In this document: positions 27,311-56,226 of the stretch, one piece after another
Numbering within the stretch: the first letter of the stretch is position 1
How the letters are laid out: the number at the start of each line of letters is the position of its first letter
DNA from: Pavona decussata
Lineage: Eukaryota
Assembly (NCBI GenBank): GCA_977016875.1
Contig: CDRNST010000049.1
Coordinates: 3,224,001 to 3,288,000 of the forward strand
Direction: 5' to 3'
Length of the DNA stretch: 64,000 nt
Notes under the pieces: model-generated
What the model was told of the DNA's origin: nothing
The model's database searches: none
Seen by the model: only the letters and a program-made list of their open reading frames with translations
Made by a program: the position numbers and the translations under genes

Positions 27311-30300
27311 TTAATAATAGAGGTAGTATAGTGCTAATATAACAGATTGAATGTGTAATAACATAGCAGTCCAGGCCTGATACGAAATACTGCCTCGTGA
27401 CATCGAAGGGGTTGATTTTTGCGCCACCGGAGAATCAGTGGTCTCATTACGTTCACCTTCCGGCTGAGATTTTGTAGTAAAGTATTCTGTAAGACAAAGG
27501 AAATGAAAAAAGTTATATTGAAGCTTTGGCGATGGTAACATGGGAATACATACCCTTTTGAAAGCAAAAGCAGTAATTGGTTATTTGTACGATAGGGGTG
27601 GGGGCACTGTGGGGGGTGGTGAAGGAAGGGTCTGGGACTGAGATGTGCTGCTCGCACTACTTGCAAGGCTGTAGTCTACTCATGCTGTGATCTGCGAAGT
27701 TTCAAAGAAAAATACTCATTTCCTTTATTCCCCCACAGGGGCTTGGCCTCTGTAGGCATCCTTGTAGCTCGAGCGTAATTATAAAACCACTTGCAGTTGA
27801 AATATACATTCACAAATCACTCGTAAAAAACACATTTGCGATTCACGATCACCCGCAACAAAAAACCATAGGAAAAATTCTGCAATCGGAGGCTTGGATA
27901 GTTCTAGACTAGTATCAAATTGCTTCTATCCTTATTTATATTTTTGTTGTACGAAACTCCCGCAAACATGTAGGATCAGATGGGATTCACTCAGGAAGTG
28001 CTCCCATCGTGGCACTGTAGCTTAGGTGGAAGAGCTGTGGATTACTAAAGCCGGCGACACACTTGGCGATTTGTCAGATATTGGCGCTATAATTCGTCGG
28101 CATTCGCCAAGTGTGCCCGTTCCCGCGATTTTCTACGCTCGTCGCTGCGAATCGTCAGTAAAGTGAACCAATCAGGTAGGGCGATTTTGACACATGACTT
28201 TTCAAAACGCCCCTCAATGGAGCCCGGGAACAAAGTTAAAGTGCCACATCGCCGCGATCGGTAAAAAAAAATCGCCAAGGGTGTCCCTATTAATCGGTGG
28301 AAAAAATCGGCGCTTATTGTGGACGCTTATTCGAGGGTGGGTGCTTATTATTTTCCTAATATTTTCAGCGAGTGAGGACATTTTTAAAGAATAACAAGTT
28401 CATTTCACTTCGACAAGACAAAATAAAGTGTAAAAGCTAACACGAACAAGCCATAAACAGTATAAAAGTTCATTGACTACCGGGGGCTATTTTGGAACAC
28501 AGCTGACGCTGACGCCCCTCTTACTTCACGCTGGGCTATTAGAGATGATTATTTTTGTTGGGAGTGGGTGAGGGTGGACGCTTATTAAGTTTTTGCACTT
28601 TCATGGTGGTCGGTTATTCGAAGGTGGGGGGTTATTATCACAACTACTGTTCAAACTCACCGTGTTTTGGTAATACCACTAGGCTCCTTGTGACTGCAGT
28701 ACTTGCTGGTCCCGTTGTGACAGTAAAGGTATAGTCTCCGGTGTCTGAAGCCTTTAGATTTTTTATGATCAAAACAGTCAACCAGTCCTCGTCTTTACTC
28801 AGCGTCGTGTGCAGTAAAACACGCCCATAACGAGAGGGGCTTAGCAGCTCCTTTCCTTTTCGCCATTCCATGTTTTCAAGCTGAAGGAATCCAGAGAGTT
28901 TCAATTACAATAGACCTTATTTGCTCCTTATCATAACTGCCCACGACAAACCAGGTGATGTTTTCAGGAGAATCGATCATATCTCTTTTTGGAAGTAAAG
29001 AATGCATGCCAGCGTGAATATGACATTTTAAAAGAGACTTTCCCCTATAGTACCCGCACATGATCTGTAATTGGGCACCAAAACAACGAAGCGAATAAGG
29101 TCTATTGCGCTGCAAAAATGTTTCTAGCATTTGTATAGCCACCGGATCACGCGAATTTCACAAATTTACTTTGACTGATGTCTACACACGTTACCAGACT
29201 TGCCGCCCTTATCAGCTCATTACACATAATTTTACCTATATTTCTTGAGTGTTGTGAAATGCCTTTCGTGTTTCAAACAATGACAGATATGCCGTGGCTG
29301 CTACACCAATCTAAACTCAGGAATTGTATTATCCAGTGATCCAGTGTTTTAAAAATAGTTTTAACCCTTGATTAAAATGTTTAAGTGTTTTTTAAGATTT
29401 TCCTATTTTTGACGTCATAAGCACGTAGATTTATTCATTTTCTTCAATTATAGCAGTTCTATTACTTTCAAAAACAGGCTTAAAATATACCATCACATTT
29501 ACTCCATTGCATGTATGCCAATCATTGACATTGAAAACCCAGCAGTATGCAGGATGTTTTTCCCATGAAGTCAACCTAGTTCAATGCCCTTAGCTCCCAC
29601 GAGTCTCCTATAGCTTAGTGGTAGAGCATATGTCCGAACTCTTAATCGGAAGATCTACAGGTTCGACTCCTGATAGGAGCACTCGGATTTCCTTTTTCCG
29701 AATATACCAGTGTCACTTTGAATAATACATCATTCTCACAACCCATGATATTTGGCCAGTCACATGATCAGAACAGAAAAAGGCGTAAACTCAAAACGAC
29801 ATACACGTGTGAAAATTGAAATCAGTGCCGATGGTCAAAGATCGCTGAGGTGCAAAACGTGACATGTTGCTTTTTCGAAATTTGAATTGTAATAGAGGTT
29901 ATGACGTCATAACACGTATATTTATCCATTTGCTTTAGTAGCCGTTCTATTACTTACAAAAAACAGTAAATTCTTACGGTTATAATGAAGGCAAGAAGAG
30001 AAAAATGGAAACTCCACCCCTTTTCTCCCAGCTTAAGAGATTTTTCTTTCTGCCGCGCGTTTGCGAACTGGCACTAGTTCTATGCGTGTAATGAAGAGTT
30101 TTAAAATTCATCTTCTTCACCATCATACATTTCACAAATAATATAATAATATAATAATAATAATAATAACAATCTTTATACAGGGAGCCCACATCACGAA
30201 AGTGATATTCAGTGGGGCCCTGTAGATTGAGAAATGATTTAACACTTACAATTATTTTAAAAATTACAATTATTTAAAAGTAGAAAATACAAAGTCGGCG

Positions 30301-33300
30301 GTAAGAAATAAAAATAAGAAATAATAATTAAAAACTAGCTAAAAACGCGCTCTTTGATACGTTGCTTAAAAATTAAAAACGATTTTATGTCTTTGAAAGA
30401 CTGTTCTAAAAGGTTCCATTCCTTAATACCCTGGTAAAGGAGTGTCTTCTTTCCGTAGTTAGTTCGTACTCGTGGAAGACGGAAATCATTCTTTCTCCGG
30501 GTATTATAGATATTATAAATAACACACTACAAAACACTTCAAAACCGAGCATCACAAAATACCGTCCCTAAAGTTCCCTAGCAACAGTTCTTATTCTGTA
30601 GTTAAAGATTGCCACGGCTCGTTTTCAGGCCTAAACGCGCTTATCGAGAAAACCCTGCTTCTTGTCCGAGGCTTGGGCCCAAATGCGATTCCAGATCATC
30701 TCAACGGGTGACGCCACATCTCATTGCGCGCGGCTTAGGACTGGGGACTAGGGTTCACAAAATACACAAACGCTTAACTGATAAAGTTCATCACTGACCT
30801 CTGGCTTTGGAGTACCACCTTTGACCGTTACATTTATGTTGATTTCATCAAAACCTTCGTATGCTCTCATGTAGACGGCGTGTGGCTCTACCACCAACCT
30901 TGGAGAAACTGAACGAAAACAAAAGAAAATAGACGAAAAATTACAACTGGTGCTTAGATTATAATTGTCCTTCTTGTCCAGTACTGGTGCTAACATTTTG
31001 GTTTTGGTCAGAAACAAAATCTCTTGCGCTTTGTACCTATCTATGAAAAGACTCTTCCTTAGAGGGGAATAGGACAAAATACAACTTTGCGAGTGTACGC
31101 ATTGGCTTTGTTGTCTATAGCATGAAGTATTTCTAACTCCCAGTACAGATTTGGGTCAAACCTTTGAACTATGACCAATCCGCGGGATGAAGATATTGTC
31201 ATGATTGGTGGGTGTGAATGCCGATTACTTCTTGTTAATTGGGATTTGGTTAATAACCGTGATTTGGAACTGTGATATTTCTCCGTCTCTTATCAACACA
31301 CCAAGCAGATGGCCGAGGGGATCGTTGGTAATGAGGACGTCAAACAAGGAAGAATGTAATTCTGAAAATTCAACGAAGCGGCGTAATTTTGTATCAAACA
31401 ATGTCTTTTCTTAGAAAGGTGAAATACCCACTTTATTATTCGTGAAATGTAAAAGGAGGATTTCTAGCGATATGCGATGAAGACCCCCTCCCCTCCCCCT
31501 AGACCTTTACCGCCTTAATAAACCCGGCAAGAAATTTAATGAGGTTTTTGAGCTCTACCACCACGACTATAGGTAAAGGAAAGAGCAAAAACTCGGTTTG
31601 TATGAAAGTGGAAGTTACTTGCGATCTTAAGGACGGTGCCTACGTTCTGCTCATCTCGGGAATGGTCCGAAAAACTTGGGTTTTTTTAATGACGGTGTCT
31701 ATTAATACGAAGGTATTTTTGCGCGGCTTATTACTATGCGGGAAAAGCACGGTTCATCAAGGGGTATGAGAATATGAACAGAAAATTGGTGGTAACTAGG
31801 GTTTTTTCATGGCTTCAATTTTGTCCCATGCATTGTTTCCATTTTAAGATTTTATAATTAATAATGCTCAAATATCTCTGAAATATGCGTAGTTACCTTC
31901 AGTTTTCTTTTGGATTCAAATCTTCTTCACCCTCCCCCTAAACTGCGCAAAAATATCTCTAGATGAGGAGGCACCATCCTAGTTAACTTCGAATTCCATA
32001 ACATTTTTAAACTGTCATGAAGATGATACTTACTCACAACTTTAACTTCCACTATTTCTTCAAACTGACAGTACTTTCCTACTGCTACAATGCGGTACGC
32101 TCCAGCTGTGTCAAACGAGATTCGCGCCAACTTTAGCTTCTTTCGAAATGACGAGGCTCCATATTTCTCGCCTTGAAAAACCAGTAAAAGAAATGTAGCT
32201 ACTTTGACTTTGAGCTTTAAACTACAACAATAATTGCCGACACCCTAACGAGTCCTATTAGTCAGTTATTTTGGATGGTTTTGCTGATAACTGAAGCAAA
32301 TGAAAAAGATTGATATGTCAGTAATTATAACCCTATGAAATGAGAAATTCACTCTGATCTTAAATTAATGGCACTTCTTATTCAAAACTTTGCAGATGCA
32401 TAATATACGATCGATACACTATTTTTGCGTTATTTTGAGCCATGCTTTTACTGGCGAAAACGTTTCGATGCATTCACACAGTTCTGGCTTTGACATATAG
32501 ACAAACAGGACAATGATAGTGTGAGAAATTTTGAACTTGTTTTATGATGTGAACTCGTAGTGCAGTGCCTAAAAAGAAGTGAGTACCAGGGCTCACTTGT
32601 TCGAAGAACGATTAACCTAGCCCAAGGTTAGGGTGAACTTCGATTCCAGTTTAATTACTAATCAATAAATTCAGTTTAGCTTAGAGTTAGCTTTAGAAAC
32701 ATTTCCAACGAGTGAAGCGTGACCCTCGTTTAACTTTTAAGCCTGGATTAGCGTCAGTGGGTTTTCGAGCAACCGGGTCCTCGACTGAACACATTCTACG
32801 TGAAAGAGAATATGTGTGAACTGTGGATGGATTATTAGTACATGTAAAACCATGGGAGTCATTCGTCGGAACGCAACCTTTGCAGCTGGGAAAAAGAAAG
32901 CCGCAAACATCCAGGCTTGAATGGGATTCGAATCCACCAACCTTCGATTGCTGGCGTAATGCTCTACAATTTCTCAAATGTCCCGATAAGCAATCGAGCC
33001 TAAAAATTATTTTAAGCTCCCTGGAAAGGTAGTCAGCGGTGAATCAATCTTTATTGGGTTTGAAAGCTTAGTTTTAGTTTCAAATTATTTACAATTTCAT
33101 GTAACACCTTGAGCAGGTGTTCACTGAAAATTACCATTTATCGATAAAAAGCGGATTTGAATACAAATGTACATACCGAGCCTGGAAAGTAAAGGAACTT
33201 TCGAGAGACTGGCCCCTGGTCGGTTTGTGAGTTATGGTGTTTCGTGATTCCGGTTCAATAAATCCTTATTTTTTTCCAGAGAAAAAGACTTTCAGCGATG

Positions 33301-36300
33301 TCTAAGTCCAGCATGGTAACCAAACAAATCCAGTGTGTTGTATTAAACAACTGATGAATCGAACTGTTCATTTTGATTAATTGGACCTTGATTAATAATA
33401 CAGTACAATAACCTCAATATAGTACTCTACCAGGAAATGCAAATCCCTCAGTATTTCTTTCAATCTGTGTCCCATTGTGATACCAGTCAACTCTAATCAG
33501 TGTTTTTTCATTCTTAATTTTCACTTCTAACAAGTCGCTGACGTCCTTGGTAGCCAAATGAGGGGACTGGGTCACCCACGTGATCACTGGTACATCTGAA
33601 ACGGTTTTTACAAGACGTCAATGTATGGGTATTTACACGGAACGGTATTGGAACCATGAGTGATATTGGATCTAAATTCATAAATAAGGAACGGTGTAGA
33701 AGGGGAACATAGGTGCATGTCCTTTAGTAAGCGTTCCAGGAAATACTTTCTTCCCACTAGTCACAATAGACCATATTCTTATTTTTTTTGGTATATTGTA
33801 CTGGATCTAGCTTGCAATGGAGGATCTTGTGGGGATTTATATTTTGGAAAAAAGTATTTGTATGTGAAAAGATTCTCTCCGCGTGTGCAAGCTGGTTTAA
33901 GTTCAATGTCGAAACCAATACAGTCTATTCAAATCGTAGACTGTGTAGGGAAATTGTGAGAAACGTTTTGTCATAAACGAAGGGGTCAATTTGAAAATCT
34001 ATTCACGACACCCCTGTCCTAACTGCGGTTGAGTACCTTCAGCTGGCGCGGGGAGAGTTAACGTAAGAATACAGCTATTTCAATTGGCGTTGACGGATGT
34101 GAAGGAAATTTGGTTTGACGGGGTCAAAGAAAAATCTTCGAAGTTGGCGGGATTTGAACCCACGACCTCTGGAGTAGATCACCAGCGCTCTAACCTGAAA
34201 CTGAGCTCTAACCTTCATTACCACGACCAGCTCTCAGCTGACCTCGTAGCTCAGTGTGCTACTTATATGTTCGTGTCTTCTCGATATTATTAATTTAATT
34301 GTGAATCTTTCAGTCCTTCTCCAAGAGAATAATGGCAAGTCATTTGTATGATAAGTTGACACATCCAACAGTAGTGTATTTTCTTTGTTTTGGACTGAAA
34401 CAAGCACTCCTTTAATACTACGTCTGGGTGGTTGATTCTTTGCCAAGTTCGTTTCATGCTTGAAAAGCACGCACAAAAATAACGCGGAAAATTATGGGGT
34501 GCTATCTAAAGTAAAATCATATTACCTTCAGTGACTATAATCCGGGACGTGCCTCTGGCCAAACCGAATGGATTTCTGACATCCACTTCATATCGCTCTC
34601 CTGTCTGTTGCAGGGTGGGCTGTGGCAGTCTCAGGATGGCAGAGTTTTGGGTAATCAGCGTTCGTGGTTTCCAGCTCCAGTCATTCACAATATACCAGTT
34701 GACGCTCCAAGCGTTTGGGTCCCGAATGTTGTCGTCGTGCAAGGTTACATTTACTTCTGCGGGTGCTTTTACGCATGCACCGAACGATTCAGGAAGTGAA
34801 ATGCGAGGTTCTTCTAAAATGGGTTGTTGGAATACAAATATATTCAAATTCAGTATCTTTTCTTGCCGGTAAAAAAAAAAATGTGCAATACAAGGCAAAG
34901 AGATCAACACGATAATTAGAAATAGTAGTAGAATTCGACCTCTCTCCCATTACAGGGATTCTATTTATTTTTGCTCTTAAAGTTAAAACTTTGGAATTCA
35001 TTCTGAACTGAACTGAACTGAACTGAACTTTATTTAACGTGGAAACATGCGCTTAGTTATATGGTTTAGTCAGAAACTACACCAGCTATTTTACAGGTAT
35101 GCCACGATAAAAATGAATAAATGAATGAATAAATAGATAAAATAAATGATATTCTCATTTATGCCCATCATCGTTGTGATCAAAGAACTCAAGGATTCCA
35201 AGTAGATTGTTTTGTTTTGATTATGGTTTTTTTTTTGTTTGTTTGTTTGTTTGTTTTTGGTTTTTTTTTTTTTTCGTATGTTTGCAAATGCAAACATTCT
35301 TTATCTCCAGAGCTTCCAATAAAATGTTTTGTTCTTTAGATTCACCGAGCTTGTGGACGAATTCTGACAGAAGGGGGCAAAGGCAATTGTTTGTAATGTT
35401 GATGATCATCAAGCTGGACAAGAGAGATTGCAATACATCAGATCATCTGTCAGTTGTACATGTGCGGCAAAAATATTCCCTGAGGGTCAGGGCATTTGCA
35501 TTTCTCTCTTCTAGTTTTATCATCTTCCAAGAATTTCAGTTAGTATACGATACCTCCAAAGATGATTATAGCATCGATTTGATAGGCAGGTCAAGAGGTT
35601 ATGACGAAAACTATCTAGATGTTGCACGTTTACAGCAATTCAAATTGTCTGCCAAAACTCGTTAATCTGTCCCATCACCCACCTTCATGTCGCAGCTCTA
35701 TAATCTTCTCGCTCCAGGCACCAGTTTTCACATCTTTGACTGTCACTCTGTAAGTTCCCAAATCCTCGGTAGTCATTTTCTCGATCTCTAGCACGTGTGA
35801 TGCCGAGAAATAATCCCCAAAGTAGGCCTTTTCGTAGGCGCGATATCGCCCTCGAGCTCGAAAAAAATTAACGTGGTCATTGTCCCCTTCCGTCTCCAGA
35901 GTAAATAACAGCGATGTTTCTCGATCAGGATCGTTCACTTTGTATTTAAACAACGTGGTCCAACTGTTTTTAGTATGACGTTTTAGCTTGTACCAGGCAA
36001 TCTCATAGGTGTGAAATTTCGCTGGATGAATGAAAGGATTCAAAAAAGAAGAGTAAAGTTTTGCCTTCAATCAAATGTTTCCAGCCAACAAAGTTGAGCG
36101 AAAACATTTAGCAATATAGGCCTAGGATATCATTGCACTTGGTGGTCATAACGTGGGTGTTTTACAAAAACGCGCCCGGATCACCAGTCTTTCAAAGTCT
36201 TTATATACTATTTGTGCCGCTGGTGTATATATAAGGTTTGGCACGTACTTTAATGCATAAAGAATTCAGAATTAACAACACCTGAAATAAAAACCTCGCC

Positions 36301-39300
36301 ACCATTTTATGTACTTAAAGACCTCTCAAAGGATGCCTTGACAATTATTTTACCCTCATCAGAAAGGATAATGTCGGCAAAGAAAAATTAGGGGGCTAGC
36401 CAGATTTTGGGCAATGACTTAGGTATGAAATACGTGTTCATCACTTACGACTGAGTTTTGTGAATATTTTTGTCTAGATGAAACATTTCTGTTGTGATAT
36501 TTCCAAACATTGATGACCTCACAAAAATTGTCTTAGTCTAGCCTAGTATAGTGCCTCTCGATTCTTGACTCAGCTTCTATGCGATTGAACAGGTAGGAAG
36601 CCAAGCACATTCCTTCAAGGAGCTCTCGTCAAATGTTTCAAATGAAACCTCTCTGTCTGTCGGTCTGTCTGTCTGTCTGTCTATCTCAGTCTCTGTTTCT
36701 GTCCAAACAAAAGTAGAGGGCAGTTGTCAATTGACTCTGTCCTGTTACTGTCCCTGCTACACCCTTCCTCTTTCCTTGCACCTGTCTTGCATGCGTTGAT
36801 TTTTATATCATTTTTTTTTTAATTGGTTACCTTCTGTGGCGATACAATAAATAACTAAATAATATATAATTAAAGTGTTCTTCCAAAATGCAAATTTCTA
36901 ATCATGCAAACAATCAATATAGACAATATAGAAGAAACTGATCAACTTAGCCCTCTCACTTCCACAACTACATTTTGAGTCTGTGGATCAAATCCTACGG
37001 TGTATCCATTAAGATGAAAGCTCCTAGGTAATTTTAATTTTAATTACAAACAAAGAAGTTTCGGAAATTTATCTCGATCGTATACTCTCAATGGATGCCC
37101 ATTAAAAACTTTATTTCTTTCTCTTGAGTAAGCCATGAATGGCTTGCTCAAGAAGATGGAATCATCTTTTTTGACAAAATAGCTTTTCGTTAAGCATTAA
37201 ACATTGTGACTTACTTGCTCCCTTGATGAAATACGGAAAGTTCCATTCCCGATGATTTTTTTCAGGCTTTTTATTAGGATCGTTCATCTTGTAAACGTTG
37301 CCAGGTAGATCATGCGAAGAATAACATCGCTCTTCCCACAAAACAAAGTGATCAAATCCTTTTTGCAGAACCAGTCTGCCACAACTTGCCAACTGCTCGA
37401 AGAATTTTTTTCCTCTTGGTACACGCCCCAAATAGGAAAGGCTCCACCCGCGGTCATCAATATAGTTCCTCGGATTTGCTACAGTGAAGTATGCTGTGTT
37501 TGTAGAGAAAATATAGCATGATTATTCTTAGCGGTCCATAAAATGTGGATGGCAGTGTACATGTACATTTCTTTGAACTTTGGAGTCCAACCTCTTTGAA
37601 GGCTGGCTGCACTGTAAGTTTCTAGGCCGGTAACTTCTACTTGTTCGCTTGTTCGTGTCAATAAAGTTTGAACAAGTTTTCCTTCATGACTCGTCCTTGA
37701 CAATTTATATTTGTTGTGTGACTAAGCCTTCTTGTGAAAGCATAATAATCTTGTATAAGGCAAGATTTTGTTGACAAATTTGGACAAGGATGGACACATT
37801 TTATGGAATGAATTATTCTTGCTGGTGCAAACGACTTGCTCGCCTAATAAGTCTTGTTACTTGTTGAATGGTGACTGAAACAGTCTTTTGCACACCAGCT
37901 TGTACAATTATCTGTACTTCTAACATAACGTACAAAATTACTGAATGCTGATTGATCAAGACAGAGGGCATTGGTATTCTTTTTACCGAGCGCAGAATTG
38001 CTCGCGTCCATTTAGACGAGCGGCAAAAATACTAGCTCCTGATTGGCATTTGGTTGATTAGGCCTGTTCCAAACGTCTGCTACTGCCGTGCCGCACTTAA
38101 ATCAATTTGACACGGCAGTAGCACGACAGTGGTTTCAAACGTCGAATTTAATTCAGTCGCGCCAAATTCTAAAACATAGGCAAAATATATTAAAATAATT
38201 TATGAATTTAGTTCGGCACGGCAATAGCACGCCGTTTGGAACAGGCCTAATCAACCTAAATAGAAATGTCCTTTTATACACTTACGAATTCCCGTAACAA
38301 TAACTCCTATAGATGCCACTGAACCGCTTGCATAAACTACTGCAGGCTTTCCCCATACCGGCATTCCACCATCAATAGACTGATCTACTCGTTGTTGAAC
38401 TATGATTTGAGGGGTCTCTATAAGAATGGGAAGCAAATCAATCAATTAATCAAATAAGAGGGCAATACAGGCGGGAGAGGAACTGAATTAATTGATAAAT
38501 TTAGTTAGGAAGGCAGCCATGCAGTCTGCCAGTCAGAGTCAGTCAATCAGTCAATCAGTCAGTCAAGTAAGTCAGTCAGTACATTAAAAATCGAACCGTA
38601 ATCTATCAGTTGATGTAACGTTCAGAGAAATCAGATGAACGTTCCATGATAGAGATAGAATTTGCGGTCACCAGAAATACAATAACATAAACATAGACCT
38701 TCCTTCCGCAAACGATTCTGTTTTGACTTCTTTCTGGACCACATTTAAGGTTTAACGTTTGGTTTTCTGCTACTATGGAATAAGGTATGTTTTTGTTTAA
38801 AACAAATCATTTACTTTAAGTTTTACACTTTCGGGCACAGTGCTAGATTAATGATCTTACCAAAGAGAGTGTGCCACATCGGCTCAGCATAATATGACAT
38901 AGAAGATTGCCATTCTGGAGTGTCTATTCCTGATAACAAGTACAACAATGTAGCATATTGATAAGAAGAACGTATCTCATAATAGCATTCTGGCTACAAA
39001 CATTACAATACAATACGGCAATACACCGTTATTACCTTATTTTGAAAGCCCGTGGTTTCAACTTAATCCTTTAAGTTCCAATTATTTTTTTAATCATAAC
39101 TAAACAAAATTCTCGAATCTGATTGGCTATCAGCAGCCATGATTTGAACATTAGTAGGGCAGAGTACGCATCATGCCTGGTGTAATTGGACAGTACGCGT
39201 CATTTGCGCGCGCTGTAATTAAATCGATCTCGAAAACTTTTAAGTTTTTTAACTTTTAAGTTAAAACTCAACTATTAATCCATCAAAAAGTTAAACTGTT

Positions 39301-42300
39301 GGCCATTTTTCTCAAATTTTGTTAGAATTATTATTTGGTAACAGGACCTCGTCTCACTCACCCAATTCTGTCTGTAATCATACTCGTGATTAAAAATCAG
39401 ACTCCCGTTGCGTGGTCGTCAGATTTTGTCAATCACTCGTATGATTCCAGACACAATTGGACCCCACTCAGTCTTATTTCCATTATTAATTAGTCCGACG
39501 ATGAANNNNNNNNNNNNNNNNNNNNNNNNNNNNNNNNNNNNNNNNNNNNNNNNNNNNNNNNNNNNNNNNNNNNNNNNNNNNNNNNNNNNNNNNNNNNNNN
39601 NNNNNNNNNNNNNNNNNNNNNNNNNNNNNNNNNNNNNNNNNNNNNNNNNNNNNNNNNNNNNNNNNNNNNNNNNNNNNNNNNNNNNNNNNNNNNNNNNNNT
39701 TTTCCGGCTTTTGTTTTACCTAGTGAAGGCGTCTGTTCGCAGGCTAGGTCTTTTATTACAAGATTTATCTCAAGCAGGAGTTTTCCTTCAGTAATTGACA
39801 AGCTACGCTCCCACTTTAAAAAACAATATGGTGAGCTCCTTCTCAATTCTGAAACGTGTTGGTTTGTAACGTAAGCAACATAAACACCCTCAGCTGTGAT
39901 TTCTAGTCTTGGTAAGTTTTCGAACTTCAAATAGAAGGAGTTGACGATCTTGAAAGAAAATGTTCTGTACTAATTTATCGTCATATTTAAATATACCAAT
40001 TTTAGCAGTAATCACGTGATGTCGATATAACTCCGTGCCATCTGGTAAGATTCCTCTGCAGGTAAATTCTTTTGCAGATTTTGTTTTCAAGATTCGCAAC
40101 TCGTGCAGAACAAGTTCCCAGTGCCCAGACGCATTGAACTCCTGGCTGTAGGATCGTTGAGTCCAGGCAATTTTGTTAAAATCCACCAGATGTCTAAGAG
40201 ATGCAAAGAAACGGGATGTTTTGAAACCAAAAAAACATAAACCGATAGGTAAAGCGCTGTAGCAGAGTTTTGCGTGTTTGAAATGGGCGTAATCTTTGGT
40301 TGAGGTGTACTTACCCTTTCAAAAACAAAACAAGGGAAGAGCAAAAGCAAATAATATACGCCAAGAAAGTGTCTTGAGTTTGAGTGCCTTATAAATGACT
40401 GTTCAAACATGATGTACACGATTTGGGGGCATTATATATATATATATATTTTTTAAACAGGACGGAAGAAGTTAAATAAGAACAAATACAGTGGAAACTC
40501 GATTTAACGAATCTATATATCGAAGTTATCGTTATAACAAACGATATTTTATTTTAATTAATTATTTTTTTATCAGCTTTATTGGGCACATCAAAATAAA
40601 CACAAAGAACAAGAAACAAAATGAGTGGTCCAAAGGGTATTGTGCAGAACGGGATAACGAGACCCATGCAACCCCTTTAATATTATGAAAACGTAAAAGA
40701 AACATTAAGAAATCGGTGTTCAACTGTAACACCGACAGGAAAATGCCTTAAGATTCAGTGCCTTGAATTGGACTAGTCAGACGTAACGTCTATACCGTTA
40801 CTTAACTGCCGCTTTTAAGCCTCCCACCACCCGGTTATAAGCCCGTCTACCTGTAAACCCCAAAATACATCTTATTATAAGCCCCCCACCCCGGATATAA
40901 GTCCCCCTCTAGTTTTGTTTGTGTTATTAGTTTTAATTTTGTTCCAAATATTGACGTCTTAAAGCTTAATTAAAAAACCTATAAATTAAAAACGCATTTC
41001 GATCAACACTGATATAGCTCGTTTCAAAACGATTCTTTTTATTCCGGCTATAAACATTCCAACCCCCCCCCCCCCCCCCCCCGATATAAGCTCCTCCGTT
41101 TATAAGCCTATCTAAAACCCCTTACGAAAGTTGTATAAGCCCAGTGCTTATGAGCGACAGTTTACGGTATTACATCCACAATTGGCAGCTTATGGTATAG
41201 GATTTAACCTACAGATGCTACTGAAAGGAACACGAATACTAAGAATTTCACTCACTAACACATGCAGACATCACGTCCCATGAACAGAGACACGTCATAC
41301 CAAAATATTTCAAGACAAATATCTAAATCTAACAAGTCCCAGTTTGATCCAATAAGGATTCGGTCATTGAACGTGTTCTTACTGCAAATAATGGTAGTTT
41401 CCAAAGGGATCGTCGGTAACTGTAGGCTTTCCGCAATTGACCAGTCTCATGTTGTAGTAAACATTATAGTGTGGGCGGCCTTTTGGTTGCTTTAATAATC
41501 CAGGCCATGTTCTGATAACCTCAACGCGTTCTTTGTCTATTTCTGTGGTGAAAAATGAAAACACAAAGCTGAGCTTCACTTTTTCACCGGATTACATAGG
41601 AGAGTTAGAATACAACTGTTTATAATTAAGCAATTTCAGAAAAAATAAGAATAAAGAATGGACAAAAATTATGTGAGGCCTGAAGCGTGTATTGTACTCT
41701 TGATTTAAGTTGCGCATGGAATCATTAAGACTGGGTAGATATAGCTTTATGGCTAAGGGCTAAAGTTACGTTGGTTTGTACACGTTCGGTTTAAATAAAT
41801 CTCATGTATGCAGTGGTCTCGCTTCACTGCTCAGCGGTATACCAGTACTTCACGCATGCGCACGTCAATATAATCTGGCCAGTGGAAGCCTTCGACAGCT
41901 CCTTCGGTCTTAGGCGTTATCAGCACGGTAAAAGCGTCACACACCTCTACGAACGGTAAGCCCGCTTTAAGCGCCAGCCCCACACTATCCAGGTGGAAGC
42001 TGTTGGCTGGGACTGTACAGCAGTGCTGGTAATGCATGTGAAGATGTAGATCACCTGGGCCCAGTTATTCAAAGCCCGATTAAGCTAATCATGGATTAAC
42101 TTAAACTTGAAATTAAGCTTTTAAAATTACTAATCAGAAAAGATCCTTGTCATTTTTGTCCGTAGTTTCGACTTAGACGTTTCGTTACAATTAACTTAAA
42201 ATTAGCTTTCAAAAAAATTTTTAGTGAGCGACATGGCAACCTCGGTTAACTTTTAATCGTGGGTTACCATTAATCCGCTTTCGAACACTGACTGGCCCCT

Positions 42301-45300
42301 GAAGTAACAGGGATACACACATGACGACAAAAGCGTGTCAAAAGAAACCATCTTAACGCAACGGTCACATTACATAGCTCTCTGATATGGTCAGGTAAAA
42401 GCCGCCCGTAAGACGACTTTAGTTAGTAGAGTTGTCTGGCCATGCTTATAAGACCTAAAAGGCCGAAACAGCTATCCATGGCTGTCCAAGTGAAATAGCT
42501 GTGCGCATACGTAAGGTATACTGGTCATAGAGCGGAGCTGAGAGTTTGACCATTGCACTTAAACTGCCTCTTTCCATGTTCAGTCTAGATAGCGCTTAAT
42601 CTAAGAGCAAGCAAAAAATCCACATGATAAAGTAACTCATTACAATCAAGTCTTTTCCTACCGAGAAGTTTCTTTTCAAGTTGAACTTGTGATGATTCCC
42701 CTGCATTTGGAAAGTAAATAATGTGACCTCAATTAATCAGAATGTTAATTCGGATTCATAATAACATAACATCAAATAACATGTTTTGTTTTAAATCTTG
42801 TAAGCGGTCTGGAATCCTAAATCCTTGAAACTGACTTTTTAATGACGCGCGATCCAACGGTCCTGATTTACGGACCGCTCTTAAACACGCGAAACTGTGA
42901 TGTTCCATTTTAAAAATGGTACTTGACGTTCTTTGACTGTTCAGCAGTGTAAAAATAGGGCTTAAAATAAAGTTCCTCAAATAGTAAGTATTCATGGAAT
43001 GGAAGTTAATATTCTCGACAGCATTTCCAAACAAAAGCGCCTTGAAAAGTTGTAGCTTTTTGAAAACTTTCCAACTGGCTTACTTAGCAGTTTCGATTGA
43101 AATTCTTTTACGAAAAAATAAAACAAAAAAATAGTTAACATGTCAGTTTTACGACATGAATTTAAACATGTCAGCCGTCCTCAAGCCTTTTGCACAGTTT
43201 TTCCTTATTCGAAGCAAATGACAGAAAAACGCTAGCAATGCGAATCTGAAAAGCAGTTAACGTTGGTTGTTACGCTATCTCAAGGAAAATGGCAGTGCAC
43301 AACACTAATTAATCTCGTGCCTCGTATAGTATGTGTGCTTTTCTTTGCGACCACGTCTGAGTCGTTCGAAACATTTAACTTCCGATTGGGATACAATACC
43401 ATTCAACATTCATAGTCACAATTTCGTGAACACAGTCTTTTTCCTTCGCACATAAAAAACAAATAACTGAGAAATAGAGAAACAGCGAAATTAACGTTCC
43501 TTTGTTGACGTCATAGCCCTACTATCCCCCAGTCTCCGGTGCTGCTTGGTATTGCATTTCAATCAGAAGTAAATTTTCACTTTTTTATACATCTCAAACC
43601 CGCAAATAGGGATTTTTTTATTTTATTTTATACAAGAACATGAAGATTTGATCAAGCAAATAAAAAGCTGGTCTTGGGTTACAGTTATAACGAGTAAAAA
43701 GCTGGTTTAAATTTATAACATGGTCTGTTATATTCAGGTTTCTTTGATTATAACTTGTAGGATTCTAAATAAATGCTAAAAATACGCGATCTATCCCCTT
43801 CAACATTTGAAAGTCAATTTAAATCAAATTATACTTGCTTCAAAGAAACGCACATTAAACTTGCCTTTAATATTGTAACGGTCTAAAACATAGGATCGGC
43901 AAAACTCAATTCTTAAATATAACCAGCGTAAAACAAAGACAATTTAAATTTATTTCCAGTTTCTCATGGACTTACCGGCATCACATCCGTAAATTTCCAC
44001 TCTCATACAGATCCATCTATACCATGTGACAGGAATGAATCTTACGTAACGAGCACGGATTCGAGGGTTGAGGTAGTGACGGACGGTATCTCTGTTATTA
44101 TTGTTCGCCACAAAGTACTGAAAGGACACAAAGTTGCAGTTTGAGTTGTTATTAACTTCTTAGAACTTTCTTCTGAAAGCATGCTGCAAATTTATCCGAT
44201 ATTTAAAACACGTTTAAACGTTAAAGTACTAAGTGCAGATAACGTTACTATCATAATTTATCAAAACCTGGATAATTAGATAATCTAATTCCGGAGTTTT
44301 GATTGGTTTAGTGGCTATAAGATATCAGCCATTAATTGACTTCTGGTCTCTCTTAAAAAAATGAAACCAACCAGGAACCAAAATATTTCTTAGTTGTTTT
44401 TGATCAGACATTTATTCCACTCGCTCTTGTTGGGTTGGTTGGGTATCTTTTAACGACTTTTAACTTAACGACTAGTCCCGAGGAAAACAGTTAGTTTTAG
44501 CCGAGGGAAACATCGAGATTCGAGGGAAAACAAACCTAACTGTTTCCCGAGGAAGCAGTCATTAAAGGTTTTGTTATATAGAAACAAAAAAAATTGCGAA
44601 GACAATTATTTAGAAAAACACATCAAAGGCTTTAAATGAATGGAACAGCGAACATACAAATCTGAAGTTAATATAAAACATTTTTCAACACCAACTTTCC
44701 CCGGAAAACGCCCTTGAATTAATTTATTTCTTTCCGAAAGTATTATTATGCCAAGGCTACTTACGGTAAAAGTTATTGTTAAGGATTCGGTAACGCTTCT
44801 TCGGCGGCTCCATTTTGCAAACAAGAATCCGGATAAATAACAAACTGGGATATTCCCGCTGTCTCTTTTTGCAGGTGGGCAAAAACATTACACCACCTTC
44901 TGTCACCGCGTAATCACGTGCAACCTACTCAAGCTACTCTTTTCCACCTCGGGAAAATATGAGTTTTGTATTGCAGCCCGCGTGGACACCATTTGATTTT
45001 GGCTTCCACCATGCATGTGATCAAAAAACAACCAACCAAAGCGCACGCTAAGTCCAACGAAACTCCAGCTATATAATAAATCTCAAATCCAACACGCACT
45101 CGTGGAATAATAGTTAAATTGCATCCTGTATGATGGGTAAAGTTATGCAGGAACTTGGCGGTGCCGTCAATAACCAAAGGAGGATAAAACAGAGAAAGAG
45201 AAAGAAATGCGGACAATAACAGCCACCAGTAAAGGGTTTACAAGCCGCACAAGAGCACTGATGGTCCAGTCCAACCTGTGCAGCATTCACATGTAGCATT

Positions 45301-46053
45301 CAAATCAATATGGTATAGTTACTTAACCCTCACTTACACCGAAGGGAATTAAAAATTTGATACATATTGATTGAAGTCTAGGCACCCCAAATATGAAACA
45401 GTTCTCCAACCTTGTGTTGGCTGTTCTTTATATGGTTTGAGATAAAGCTATGTATAACGAGTAATAAACTGCTTGCATTTCATCTTGCAGGAAAAAAATG
45501 GCTGCAGTCGTAATGAAATAGAAACTGGTACTTACTCGTTCACGTTCTTCTGTACTGATTACATCCCAAGAAAACTCATCCAGACTGTATTGTATCACAT
45601 AACCTGTAACCCAACGAGGTTTACTGTGACCAGAATGCCCTTGAGTCGCAAATCCATCAATGAACCTCTCTGTTAACAAGTCGATTTCTAAAGAAAGGAA
45701 ACAGCGTTCACACAGGGTGTCAAGAAGACGATGGTAAAAACGGAAAGATAAATGGAAATAAGGGACGCCTCGGGGTTCATTTTAGCAGAACGTCTGTTTG
45801 GAAGGCCTTGCACTATGTAAAAACGTGACAAAAATTGCACAAACTTCGCACGTGTCGACGGGCCTTTAACCTCCCCTAAACATTTTGATTTAATTTTGAT
45901 GAAAACACCTCGGAATTCCCCTGTTGAGATGGCACCTAAAACCGCTTTCGCGTAATCAAGTAAAAACAATTCCTCTTGTTTGTGGAAGGATCAAAAATAT
46001 CCGGCTCTACGATAATGCACTATTGAACAATTATTCCACGAGAGCGCGTTGGG

Positions 46054-46101
<48 letters not shown>

Positions 46102-47598
46102 AATCATCTCATAGCAACAAGCGTGAGTGGAATAATTGTTTTATTAAAAACAATCACGAAATATTGCTAGATTTTGCGGATTTCCGCTTTGCGAGTAACA
46201 ATTAGAAGACAATTTAATGGTCTCTTTTTCTCGGGCATGGTATAATAGCTCATACACCATGGCCGCTAAGCCAATCAAATCGCTCGAATTGCATTACACA
46301 ATGATCCAGTTTTTAATAATAAGGGTAAGCTAGGATTTCGAAGGACCAAGTTGCTGGGAAGTTCGGAGGATGAGGATATGATGTTCTCTACAAAATGAGA
46401 ACAAATGATTTAGAATTAAGAACAAATTATTAATCTTTCAAGGCTACCCCTTTTAAATGTACTACAGTGAGCTGGAAATAAAAAAAACGACATTTGTATA
46501 TCAGTATTTTCCTTTAATTATCTTGCTGGGAACTCCAGAATTTTCCAAACCATTTCACTGATGTAGTATGACCAGTTTTATTTACCTAAGTACTCGTTAG
46601 GTATGTGGTATTTCTTCCCTCGTCGTTCGTAATTTTCCACGTCCTTCACGCACCAGCCTCCGTTATGGTTGAGGCGTGCATTCCGGGCTCTCGTATTGAG
46701 GCCAGCCCTACTGAATGTAGAGCCTGTTATTTGAGAGTCTCTGATTTTCTTGGATTCCATTCCAAGCGCTGCGTTACAACCTGTACATGGCAAGAGAATC
46801 AGTTGTGATTTTTACCAGATACTGAAAAGGAACAGTAACCAACGCGCTCAGTACATGGGTTTACCTTTTAAAGGAAAATTTTAATGTCTAGTTTATTTTC
46901 ACATGTTTGAACAATTGTTTGTACATATTTTGGCGCCTTGTTTTTGTTATGAATTTTTCTCACTTTTGGAAACCGCCTTAGAACTTTTGGATTTTGGCGC
47001 TATATAAATTGTCATTGTAATCGTAATTGTGATTGTAATTGCAATTGTGGTGGGTATTCATCTGCAGTATTTGTAGCTGGTCAAAAAGTTATGCCTGCTA
47101 ATGATCCACAGATTCCGAACCTTATTAATGAAACAAAAAAATGGCGCTGGGGTAAACACTTTCTTCGCGCCTTCTCTTTTGTCCACTGTAGCAAGCGAGT
47201 TCCTGTGTAATTGCACAATTATAAGCGGTAAAATAATTGAACTTCTAATTATTTAATATATATAATGATTCGGTTTAATAAATTGTGATTTTTTGTTGCT
47301 CACTTTTTTTTTCAGTGACTACTAAATGGAGTAAGTTAACTCACCGTGCGAGGGTAACCCAGAGACTGTTGTTAGTAACAACGTTTGGAAACCCTAAACA
47401 GTGCTATACCAATAACTTGAGAAGTCAATTAAACCGTTCCGAGTTTAAAAAATTTCCCTTCTCATAACTGGGATTCTTAAGCTTATTTATCAAGGTACCC
47501 GGCTGAAAACTACTATGACGAAATTCGCGTCTTTCTAATCTGAGCCATTTTAAAACATAAACAAGTTGTCTGTACATGAAGAAGAATGCTGTTTACTT

Positions 47599-49502: not shown

Positions 49503-52500
49503 GTGGTGTTAATGGAAAATAAACAGGATAGTTTCCTTATTAATACGCACCTGGTAGATTACCAAATATGTCCAAAGCTAAACAGTCGGTGGGACCCTGA
49601 CGCGATTCGTATATGTGGAAGTGCCTAGCGTAGATAGTGGGCATAATGTCCAGGATACCCGCACATTGATGTTTTTCTTCAAATTCAATTCTAATTCCCT
49701 GAAAGCAAAGGAATAATCATTAATTCCGGTCAACCTTCTCGTATCTTCCGGTTTTTCTCTCTTCCCACTTCTTTGTAACGTTTGGCGACAGTTTTGTGTC
49801 TTGCAAACAATTATCTTGATATGCACTTTATCAACATCCGCGTACACTAAAAATTAACCCTCCCCATTCAAAATTATAGAGCAACTGTATGCTGAATATT
49901 CCTATCATTAATTGGTACAGCCTAAATTTTTCATTCTTTTTACAAGTATGCAAACTTTCAAAAAGAAAATTTTAAAAAAACACATGCTTGCTTGTCTTAA
50001 TTTTGATTCATAAGGATCTAATAGTCAGTAATGAACAATCCACAGCCACAGCATCGTGTGGAGAGAAAAATTGGACAGTTTGGGTTTTTGGTGTGCTAGC
50101 CCGCTCAGTTAAACGAAACCAAACCATATAACAGACCACAATGCATCTTGTAATACACTTGGGACCAGATTCCATATAACTATGCTTTTATACCTATGTA
50201 AATCCTTTAAGAGGGCTATACACCCCTTATCTATGTCAAATTAGTATAAATCTACTAGTGCTCTATCACGAATGTCGTTCTCTGATTAGCTACGCTACTC
50301 GCTATAGATAGTGAGTAGCAGTTTTCAAAAAAATGGCGGCCGCTTCGTCGCGTTTTTGAATTGTCTGCGATGAGGAAATAGATAATTTACTTGTTTAGTT
50401 TTGAACGACTAGTAGATTTATATTCACTCTCGATTTCTATGTGTGATAGAAATATTCCCGAGATCATAATCTAATTGTTAAATAGTACCATAATATTATA
50501 TTTGAAAACCAGTCTCGCTCCCAGAGAGGGAGGCAGGCCTCCCAATTTACAAGCTATGGGAACGGGGTTGATTTCAAAACAATACCGTGTGAATAAATAC
50601 AAATGTTTGTTTTTAATACCTGGTTAGGCTTGTCGCTCAACTGGTTGTATGTCCCAGAAAGGCTCCAAACTTCATTGTCAGTGCTATATCGTAGCTCTAA
50701 AGGCCGTCTTTTCCTATTCGGATGGCATTTCCCATCATGCCTAGGTTGCCCAAGAAACACAATTCGCGAGATTGCGTACAGCTCCCTCATGTCAATTCGA
50801 AAAAACGGGGACACATCGTTGCTAGAAGCCTGGGAAACAGATACAGGATATCACTCACGAGAAAGCTTGATTTAGGAAGATTTAGCTTTTCTGATAATTT
50901 GGGACGCTGACGCTTGTTGTAGCCATTATAGCCTTTTGCAGCTATTTCCAGTATAAAACCTGGCGTCCAATGTGCTTAACCGCAGTTGTATAAAATTGAA
51001 AAAGCTAAAACTGAGCCGGAGAGACAAAACAGAAAACTAAAATATGTCAAGCTCCTTTGATCCGATAAAACATCTAATCAGTAAAGTCAATAGTGCTTTT
51101 AAAAGGACGGTAGACTTCCTAATACAGGCCTATTTTTGCGCGGTTAATGACTATGCGAGAAAAGCAGATCAAGCAAAGGCTACTGAAATTCAAAATTATG
51201 CAGTTTTCAAAGATAACTTAGCTTCAATTTGGAAAATAGCTTATCCCATACGTTGCTATATATGTTTTTTGAAGCATTTTAGAGTCATTGTTAGTTACTT
51301 TTAAGTAACTAACAACAACGTATGGGATAAGCTATTTTCCAAATTGAAGCTAAGTTATCTTTGAAAACTACGTGGTTGCCCCAGTTTATATTTTAGATTC
51401 CAACAATTTTCGTAAGGACCTGTTTTTCCAGCGTTTTTATAAACCGCAAAAAAATTAAATACCTTTGAATTAGTGGGCACCAAGAAACCGGACCATCCCG
51501 AGATGCGCAGAAGGTATGCGCAGTATCAAAAGGGGCATCGTCCTTAAATCGATGTTAAAAATCACAGTTAAAGGGACTATGTCAGCTGGGGCACATGCGC
51601 AGTAGAGTCCAATTGAGACTAATTTGCATAAAAAAGCGTCGCGGGATTTTTGTTTTTCCGCTTTTGCAAAACCTTTCAAAAACATCGCAACACACAGCTT
51701 CTATAAATACAAAAGAGCGTTTGTAAATGAAAAATTCAGCTAACTTTCCGAAGATGAACACGATTTATTCAAACAGATGTAAACAGCGTCCTGAACTTGA
51801 CTCTGCAATGGTATTTGAAAAGGTTGGGCCAATGGTTTCAAAGTGCTTCTCATCAAGGCGAGGATACGCCTGGGGTGACATAGCCCTTTACCATGAACGT
51901 CATCACTGTCACTGTACTATTTTTTTCTATTCACATCTGTAAAATTGTGAAAGTATATTGGTTAAGGTTGAGTTGTGCACGCACTTAATTTTCGCGGGCC
52001 GGAAGCTTTTCTTCGGACCTCCTCGCCTTACCACATCCGGTCTTATACAAGTCTGCTTGAGACTTTATTTTCCGTAGTACTTCAAACAGAAAGCAACACG
52101 GAGGTATAATAATCGCTCTTTTCAACATGTCCGTTTAAACCCGTGTTTTTTCATACTTTAAGTGTTGTTATTCACTTACAGGAATGCAAAATAACATCTG
52201 CCCAGGTTCAATGTAGCGCAGTCTCAGAGGGGATGGACTGCCTCTTATGGTTTTTAACCACAACAACTTGACTCTGCCTTGAGTGGTCCATAATCCCAAG
52301 GACTGAATGTCGTCTGTAAATCAACCACAACTTTATTAGTTTTTCAGTCTTCTAGCATGCTAACAAGGCCTAAAAATTTAGGACACCAATAAAATACAAG
52401 CATGAACACATTGGTCACACAACTTGCATTTTGCTCTGACGCTAATGCTTGAAACGTCAACTTTCGAATCTCCGTACGGTGGTCAAATTATTTTATCAAC

Positions 52501-56053: not shown

Positions 56054-56226
56054 CTGCATTTCAAATAAAACCATTTCAGATTGGTTATTCGGGTGGTGCG
56101 GTGGGAGCAAGGGGAAGGGGATGGGGTGGAGTGTGTGTTTTGAGGGATGTGATGTACCCTGTGGGGGGGGGGGGTGTTCCTTCCATAGTCGGGAATAATG
56201 ATTTATATCAAGCTACGTTATTTTAC

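Follow-up and report, generated by a model that had tools for sequence, protein, structure and literature searches.

A PAN/WSC-like module on a constitutive exon, probably displayed from the B–C loop of a split V-set immunoglobulin-like domain in the coral Pavona decussata

This study concerns a multi-exon gene on the minus strand of contig CDRNST010000049.1 of the coral Pavona decussata (GenBank assembly GCA_977016875.1), within a window of 64,000 nt (contig positions 3,224,001–3,288,000; all coordinates below are positions in the window). In the reading that we favour, and that we hold to be likely though short of assured, the gene encodes a V-set-type immunoglobulin-like (Ig-like) domain in two halves (38286–38417 and 35683–36021), and a constitutive exon between the halves carries a PAN/WSC-like module that is displayed from the B–C loop of the domain. 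Strands A–B would come from exon 38286–38417 and strands C–G from exon 35683–36021, and in the mature protein the module (37215–37493) would protrude from the B–C loop, the equivalent of complementarity-determining region 1 (CDR1) of antibodies.

Exon structure and splicing

The evidence for splicing comes from assembled RNA contigs of X1, X7 and X8, which represent three studies and two coral species, among the four runs compared (X1, X3, X7 and X8); assembled contigs show the presence of a form and may miss rare isoforms. The label 'RNA' of X1, X7 and X8 is a guess made by the tool, and the contigs of these runs are argued to be mRNA because they have the spliced form and the genome holds a single, intron-containing copy. 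The pieces of the split domain and the introns between them are as follows.

38286..38417, minus strand: N-terminal Ig exon (IgN) of 132 nt, which reads (E)TPQIIVQQRVDQSIDGGMPVWGKPAVVYASGSVASIGVIVTGI and closes with the first base of a split codon; present in spliced contigs of X1 and X8
37494..38285, minus strand: phase-1 intron, 792 nt, with an inverted-repeat element resembling a miniature inverted-repeat transposable element (MITE); skipped in the X1 and X8 contigs
37215..37493, minus strand: module exon, 279 nt = 93 codons, phase 1-1, (P)YFTVANPRNYIDDRGWSLSYLGRVPRGKKFFEQLASCGRLVLQKGFDHFVLWEERCYSSHDLPGNVYKMNDPNKKPEKNHREWNFPYFIKGA; RNA joints on both sides
36022..37214, minus strand: phase-1 intron, 1193 nt, with a tetranucleotide run near 36646–36704; skipped in the X1 and X7 contigs
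35683..36021, minus strand: C-terminal Ig exon (IgC), 339 nt, KFHTYEIAWYK...DLGTYRVTVKD...IIELRHE; strands C, C′, C″, D, E, F and G

An unbroken contig of 2868 nt in X1 joins 38930–38861, 38417–38286, 37493–37215, 36021–35683 and 34813–34560, and a contig of 2290 nt in X8, which belongs to a second species and another study, has the same joints, with three differing letters at the joint of 36021 to 37215. The latter joint is also made by a 352-nt contig of X7, from the third study, and the contigs of X3 cover intronic repeats only. Every skipped stretch has GT..AG ends on the minus strand.

The three coding pieces all lie on the minus strand with introns of phase 1 throughout, and they read as had been quoted from the letters alone: one exon ends in SIGVIVTGI, another starts with KFHTYEIAWYK and the middle frame lies between them. 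Exon 38286–38417 ends in ..ASIGVIVTGI and one base (C) of a split codon, followed by GTAAGT, and exon 35683–36021 starts with CG, followed by KFHTYEIAWYK; the split codon is P when the flanking exons are joined directly and T after the module exon. The module exon starts as (P)YFTVANPRNY, and its frame ends in ..PYFIKGA plus one base at the donor A/GTAAGT at 37215, which had been given correctly. The original prediction gave this exon as 37215–37478, with 264 nt and 88 codons; the exon proved to be real, in frame and of phase 1-1, but the RNA contigs place its acceptor at 37493 (joint of 37493 to 38286, CT..AC on the plus strand, in X1 and X8), for a length of 279 nt or 93 codons. The acceptor at 37478 is an in-frame AG lying 15 nt inside the real exon; it is used by no contig, and its use would remove the conserved YF.VA residues.

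The middle exon is used in mRNA, in frame. It had also been proposed to be skippable, with a switchable display of the module as the consequence. Of the three joints that bear on this proposal, that of 37215 to 36021 was seen, that of 38286 to 37478 was replaced by 38286 to 37493, and the skipping joint of 38286 to 36021 is listed in none of the four runs, in whose assembled contigs minor skipping may be missed. A cassette exon would give both inclusion and skipping junctions; inclusion alone was seen, in X1, X7 and X8. Three spliced contigs from three studies include the exon and all orthologues keep it, and as far as the data show the module exon is constitutive and always spliced in. The splicing switch, the most attractive part of the finding, has no support so far.

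Conservation and selection

When 1.84 billion representative proteins were searched exhaustively with the module by HMMER, nine genuine relatives were returned, the open reading frame (ORF) of the window itself among them, and a word search added one more; no long protein that genuinely matches the module was returned among these representatives. All of the relatives are short ORFs bounded by the splice sites of the exon, read through ..ACAG/.. at the start and through ..G/GTAAG, as 'SK', at the end. The related contigs derive from Tara Pacific coral metagenomes, the runs being labelled either with one coded species or as 'coral metagenome'. Three other hits of the representative search (P0001, P0010 and P0012) were rejected as repeat or low-complexity artefacts or as a short repeated motif, and not homologues of the module. 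P0012, a repeat protein of 556 residues, aligns with module residues 5–25 through a short motif, P..YY.DKGW...DF(L/F)G, in common with the N-terminal segment NPRNYIDDRGWSLSYLG (E 2e-5 summed over six repeats), a likeness that could be due to chance or to a common short structural motif.

The order of N-terminal Ig exon, module and C-terminal Ig exon is found in every locus long enough to judge (L002–L011 and L036), with the AG and GT sites at the same places and with a module exon of 276–303 nt, always a multiple of three. The module exon is thus kept, with the same splice sites, in all of the orthologous loci in which its presence could be checked and in at least ten other lineages, and the donor C/GTAAG of the N-terminal Ig exon is conserved. 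Loci L037–L040 were left out, being too short or having an intron expanded by transposable elements, in which the presence of the module cannot be judged. In L004 a gene for a 497-residue G-protein-coupled receptor (7tm_1; 5405–6898) lies on the opposite strand inside the 5.6-kb intron between the N-terminal Ig and module exons. L005 and L006 belong to one contig of 90,930 nt, which carries the module exon twice, inverted and about 6.5 kb apart; the pair stems either from a palindromic artefact of the assembly or from a local duplication with inversion in that species.

The best conserved of the three pieces is the N-terminal Ig exon, with 81–88% amino-acid identity to the window in eight orthologous loci and a ratio of nonsynonymous to synonymous divergence (dN/dS) of 0.05–0.14; the C-terminal Ig exon has 45–74% identity and a dN/dS of about 0.13–0.36, and the module 35–59% identity and a dN/dS of 0.12–0.44, dS being near saturation in these comparisons. 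For the module, the proportion of nonsynonymous differences (pN) was lower than that of synonymous differences (pS) in every pair compared. The same faster rate as in the deeper comparisons is seen in X8, the second species, in which 23 of 277 bases (8%) of the module exon differ, against 3–4% in the neighbouring exons. The module exon is spliced into mRNA, keeps its splice sites across the loci and shows pN lower than pS in each comparison. These features set it apart from an ORF that is open by chance: it is a genuine coding exon, under purifying selection yet faster in its evolution than the exons on either side. Its 19 invariant positions are P7, R8, D13, R14, W16, G22, C37, L40, G45, D47, H48, C56, S58, S59, P63, N65, R81, F88 and G91, and it varies in sequence and length in two stretches, at about residues 24–36 and 66–80.

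The module is single-copy in the 602-Mb genome, in which a search for paralogues found only the locus itself; a match at E = 5 on contig C77 was rejected as the ORF of a repeat element. A word search with the C-terminal Ig exon gave 14 matches, all 14 of them genomic exon ORFs with intron-derived ends, which hold no information on isoforms.

Fold and family of the module

An AlphaFold2 model of the module, built on an alignment of ten sequences, has a mean predicted local distance difference test score (pLDDT) of 66, with the core residues 19–60 above 80 and the termini below 50. The core is formed by a strand (19–23), a helix (30–44) and two further strands (48–52 and 55–58), and extra short strands are predicted at residues 3–5 and 86–88. 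When this model was compared with the PDB by Foldseek, the WSC domain of yeast Wsc1 (7pz2) took the first and second ranks (E 0.09, probability 0.90), in keeping with the WSC-like character that had been read from the peptide, and the PAN domains of HGF and plasminogen were among the weaker rows. The VIA fold search, which is independent of Foldseek and has a stated background of Z 7–8 for best matches, gave Z 5.0 for 7pz2 (root-mean-square deviation, rmsd, 3.3 Å over 70 residues), Z 4.5 for a segment of fungal glyoxal oxidase and Z 4.3–4.4 for residues 118–213 of Kremen1, which we take to be its WSC domain. A series of PAN/Apple domains was found as well (HGF N, leech antiplatelet protein, plasminogen, S-receptor kinase, the apple domains of kallikrein and factor XI, HAI-1 MANEC, AMA1 and MIC4), and about 22 of the top 29 rows have the WSC or PAN/Apple fold. 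Of the five-stranded antiparallel sheet around one helix that defines this superfold, the model has the helix and three strands in its core, at modest scores (E 0.09, Z at most 5.5). A PDB sequence search with the module gave no match. With moderate confidence, the predicted fold of the module is of the PAN/Apple–WSC type.

Membership of the WSC family, which had been implied, was not borne out. No Pfam family, WSC (PF01822) included, matched the window module or its nine orthologues, PF01822 being searched at E up to 10, and PAN_1 (PF00024) likewise gave no match to the module; a PF01822 scan of the whole genome matched at least 21 other exons, the module exon not being among them, and at least 148 PAN_1 matches were found in single open frames. 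Nearly all of the WSC and PAN_1 matches in the genome are without internal stops, and many lie in tandem clusters (contigs C1, C275, C339 and C50); PAN-type modules have undergone a large expansion in this genome. The module has only two of the eight WSC cysteines, C37 and C56, both of which are invariant, and the CGG motif is absent. The spacing given as C-x6-G-F in the original prediction is in fact C-x7-G-F, within the pattern C-x7-G-F-x2-F-x6-C-Y-S.

In profile–profile alignment by hhalign against ten WSC exons of the same genome, the module reached a probability of 0.85% (P 0.065) over 32 columns, in a plausible register. Of the two cysteines in each of the WSC motifs CxxxC and CxC, the first is matched by C37 and C56, respectively; the second is matched by position 41 (V in the window, A in the other sequences) and by S58, which is invariant. 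This register also brings GF, CY and YxG into line with the WSC consensus. WSC domains share their fold with PAN/Apple domains (PMC9024836). In Wsc1 the helix is tied to strand β4 by C49–C69 and C53–C71, both of which are bridges common to PAN domains, and C27–C86, C90–C98 and the CGG motif are WSC-specific and hold the long L5 loop (PMC9024836). Because C37 and C56 fall on the C49–C69 pair and position 41 and S58 on the C53–C71 pair, one core bridge appears to be intact and both partners of the other to be gone, as descent from a PAN/WSC core would predict. The AlphaFold2 model has C37 within the helix and C56 within a strand, and the core PAN disulfide that the module would keep is the one from C37 to C56 in the central strand. 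The PAN topology, β1-β5-β3-β4-β2, places the first and last strands side by side (PMC9024836), and by analogy this would suit an insert whose termini are close in space. In our reading the module is a reduced, one-disulfide member of the PAN/Apple–WSC superfold, which resembles WSC and is not a demonstrable member of PF01822.

The Ig host domain and the nesting

In the searches and in folding, the spliced model was treated exon by exon. The C-terminal Ig exon matches the Pfam V-set family (PF07686) at E 0.005 (17.4 bits against a cut-off of 26, which is below the gathering score) and I-set at E 0.0096, and such weak matches recur in all four of the orthologues compared. Its AlphaFold model has seven strands with a pLDDT of about 60, strands C, C′, F and G being above 70. 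Foldseek gave almost solely V-set domains (CTLA-4, Nav β subunits, PD-1, the light-chain variable domain and the T-cell receptor), with probabilities of about 0.9–0.99, and almost every one of the top 50 VIA rows is a V-set domain or another domain of Ig-like type (best Z 8.3, rmsd 2.5 Å over 83 residues). The V-set sandwich with its C′ and C″ strands is thus found in the exon, over strands C–G only. For conventionally numbered V domains the VIA alignments run from about residue 26–31 to the end of the domain, and since the matches begin near residue 27 the exon, which is without strands A and B, corresponds to a V domain from the CDR1-equivalent loop onwards. A PDB sequence search with the profile of this exon gave only matches with E above 0.2.

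The N-terminal Ig exon encodes 43 residues, in which the usual P-x-I-x...G-x-V-x-I-x-V-x-G pattern runs up to the split codon. Its pattern and length suit the first strands of the fold, and because these strands are absent from the downstream exon it is taken to supply strands A, A′ and B of the V-set Ig-like domain. The placement of the module in a B–C loop, as first proposed, therefore stands as regards the downstream exon, a V-set domain without strands A and B, and holds for the whole provided that the upstream exon supplies these two strands. Among the canonical Ig features, the strand-C tryptophan (IAWYK) and DLGTY are kept and V stands at both cysteine positions (..IGVIVTG.. and ..YRVTV..); the host is a disulfide-less V-set Ig-like domain. 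The nested arrangement is supported, partly by inference, the exons having been modelled singly.

A second Ig-like domain of the same gene, also on the minus strand (30793–30924 and 28647–28886), is split by an intron in its B–C loop (..VKGGTPKPE / LENMEWRKG..). The split at 30793/28886 is of phase 0 and lies four codons nearer to the tryptophan, and its intron is without an inserted exon.

Alternative readings

Several observations weigh against a PAN/WSC-like module nested in a V-set domain. The module model is moderately confident only (pLDDT 66, termini below 50, ten aligned sequences), the top VIA row is an unexplained segment of thyroglobulin (Z 5.5) and all fold scores of the module (Foldseek E 0.09, Z at most 5.5) are below the safe levels of the tools; because each score alone falls short, the evidence for the fold is the concentration of the matches on one superfold. 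The profile–profile homology to WSC is not significant, and hhalign against nine PAN_1 exons of the same genome found nothing (P 0.22, 11 columns outside the core). On the side of the host, the N-terminal Ig exon has no Pfam or PDB sequence match, hhalign of either Ig half against the paralogous single-exon Ig domain was uninformative, and the two Ig exons are paired by inference. The module might accordingly be of other than PAN/WSC descent, namely a common small α/β arrangement, a product of AlphaFold bias due to a shallow alignment, a novel fold of the lineage or an exonized piece of intron. The missing Pfam match, the P of 0.065 to WSC and the lack of any signal to PAN_1, Z values below the stated background of 7–8, and a module that has neither a paralogue in the genome nor a place in any long protein among the 1.84 billion representatives would all agree with such an origin. 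However, chance is not expected to place one superfold in about 22 of the first 29 VIA rows and at both leading ranks of Foldseek, the cysteine pattern follows the known disulfide pairing, and GF, CY and YxG match the register of the WSC consensus; we regard a descent outside PAN/WSC as rather unlikely.

It is very unlikely, in our judgement, that there is no nested domain at all. The upstream exon would then form its own unit with the module or be a linker, and the downstream Ig domain would be incomplete or strand-swapped and completed by something else. The lack of a detectable Ig signal in the upstream exon in Pfam and PDB sequence searches would fit, as would the derivation of the fold support from single exons and the short strands at 3–5 and 86–88 of the module model, which have no identified partner; against this, the alignment of the downstream exon to V domains starts only at about residue 27, which leaves two N-terminal strands to be supplied, the pattern just before the split codon belongs to the best conserved piece, and the second Ig-like domain of the gene is also split in its B–C loop. 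A regulated cassette exon, included or skipped according to tissue, stage or stress to give a plain or a module-bearing Ig domain, would exploit a symmetrical exon whose skipping keeps the frame, the direct join giving a normal ..VTGIPKFHTYEIAWYK pattern, and assembled contigs do drop rare variants. Yet phase 1-1 is not telling, because any constitutive exon between two phase-1 introns must have it; the joint of 38286 to 36021 appears in none of the four runs, the X1 and X8 contigs run through both joints in assemblies that kept only the inclusion form (minor variants being droppable), and the exon is under purifying selection and kept in every orthologous locus seen. Regulated skipping is therefore unlikely, and the constitutive, nested module remains the reading that we prefer.

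Gene context

The neighbouring exons of the gene are as follows.

46581–46793, minus strand: F5/8 type C (discoidin) exon
38861..38930, minus strand: upstream exon, 70 nt, ending in ..IDTPEWQSSMSYYAEPMWHTLF; joint of 38417 to 38861 in the X1 and X8 RNA contigs
34526..34813, minus strand: next exon, a complete divergent Ig-like domain in a single exon, EPRISLP...SVNWY...RIIVTE; joints of 35683 to 34813 and of 34526 to 33595

The exon 34526..34813 is kept in loci L003, L009 and L036, and more divergent Ig-like exons of the same gene lie downstream of exon 35683–36021. Further F5/8 type C matches occur in upstream minus-strand ORFs at 43953–44129 (E 2e-7) and 45431–45679 (E 7e-5), with weaker ones still further upstream on the same strand at 50557–50850 and 55808–56212 (E about 0.02–0.04). 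At its start the gene probably encodes at least one discoidin domain, and it looks like a multi-exon gene for an extracellular discoidin–Ig adhesion or recognition protein.

The MITE-like element (38049–38259), in the intron between the N-terminal Ig and module exons, has nested inverted arms (38049–38075 with 38233–38259, 96% complementary, and 38078–38104 with 38203–38229), and contigs of all four runs are stacked on it at very high depth, which argues for a widespread, transcribed repeat family. The tetranucleotide run (GACA/CAGA, about 36646–36704) lies in the intron between the module and C-terminal Ig exons, and reads appear to be cut there. A run of N occupies about 39505–39699 in the next intron upstream.

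Origin, role and significance

The most likely origin of the arrangement is the shuffling of a 1-1 exon into an existing phase-1 intron, in a genome that has many PAN and WSC modules encoded by single exons; the single-frame WSC and PAN_1 matches of the genome would have provided ample raw material. The module has an invariant polar set (D47, H48, S58, S59, N65 and R81) and two variable loops (about 24–36 and 66–80). Most likely it would give an extracellular protein of adhesion or recognition a further surface for binding ligands, be they carbohydrate or protein. A bolder proposal, which we consider speculative and improbable in its full form, is that stony corals have an ancient germline 'domain-in-CDR' receptor, in which a fast-evolving PAN/WSC-type module on the CDR1-equivalent loop of a disulfide-less V-set domain of a discoidin–Ig surface protein recognizes glycans or partners (symbionts, microbes, self or non-self), possibly with condition-dependent skipping unseen in the contigs.

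Domains inserted in others, PAN/WSC modules and Ig-like domains are all familiar. What appears to be undescribed is a module of PAN fold that has a symmetrical exon to itself within the B–C loop of a V-set domain and is kept in many lineages of corals, no specific precedent having been found in the literature on domains inserted in Ig loops. If confirmed, the arrangement would be a clean natural example of exon shuffling making a nested domain, a germline counterpart of 'knob' and LAIR1-insert antibodies, and a new, highly reduced one-disulfide branch of the PAN/WSC superfold. Its interest lies in a natural loop-display architecture in a basal animal, and for screening ligands in the cell-surface recognition of corals the module is a concrete target.

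Comparison with known systems

The best structural matches of the module are the WSC domains (PF01822; yeast Wsc1, 7PZ2, and human Kremen1, 5FWS), which it resembles, judged from its model, in having a helix set against an antiparallel sheet. A disulfide from helix to strand would occupy the same register in both, and both begin with Y-x-G and have a GF/GY motif behind the helix; the WSC matches in the genome, like the module, each lie in one stop-free open frame. In contrast to WSC domains, the module has no hidden Markov model (HMM) match and two of eight cysteines, is without the equivalents of C27–C86 and C90–C98 of Wsc1 and without the CGG motif, has an extra conserved N-terminal segment of 19 residues (PRxYIxDRGW), and sits inside another domain and not in tandem. 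The PAN/Apple domains (PF00024; HGF N, plasminogen, the apple domains of factor XI and kallikrein, apicomplexan AMA1 and MIC4) belong to the fold class predicted for the module, many of them matching at Z 3–4.3, and one of the two core helix-to-strand disulfides common to PAN and WSC would be kept in the module (PMC9024836). The module differs from them in having no HMM or profile match, in the loss of one core bridge and in the absence of a bridge joining the termini.

A whole globular domain in the loop of a β-sandwich is seen in the integrin β-subunit, in which the I-like domain, of vWA fold, is inserted in a loop of the Ig-like sandwich of the hybrid domain and is constitutively present. 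The two systems would be alike in that a binding domain is placed constitutively in a sandwich loop, whereas the integrin insert has the vWA and not the PAN fold, has another host domain and loop and is unrelated by descent. In the bovine ultralong CDR H3 'knob' and in human LAIR1-insert antibodies, an extra disulfide-bonded unit stands on a hypervariable-type loop of a V-set domain, either somatically or in CDR3. The display of an extra disulfide-bonded binding unit from a V-set loop is what the proposed coral structure would have in common with these antibodies; the coral insert, however, is germline-encoded on its own exon, would occupy the CDR1-equivalent loop and is conserved across coral lineages.

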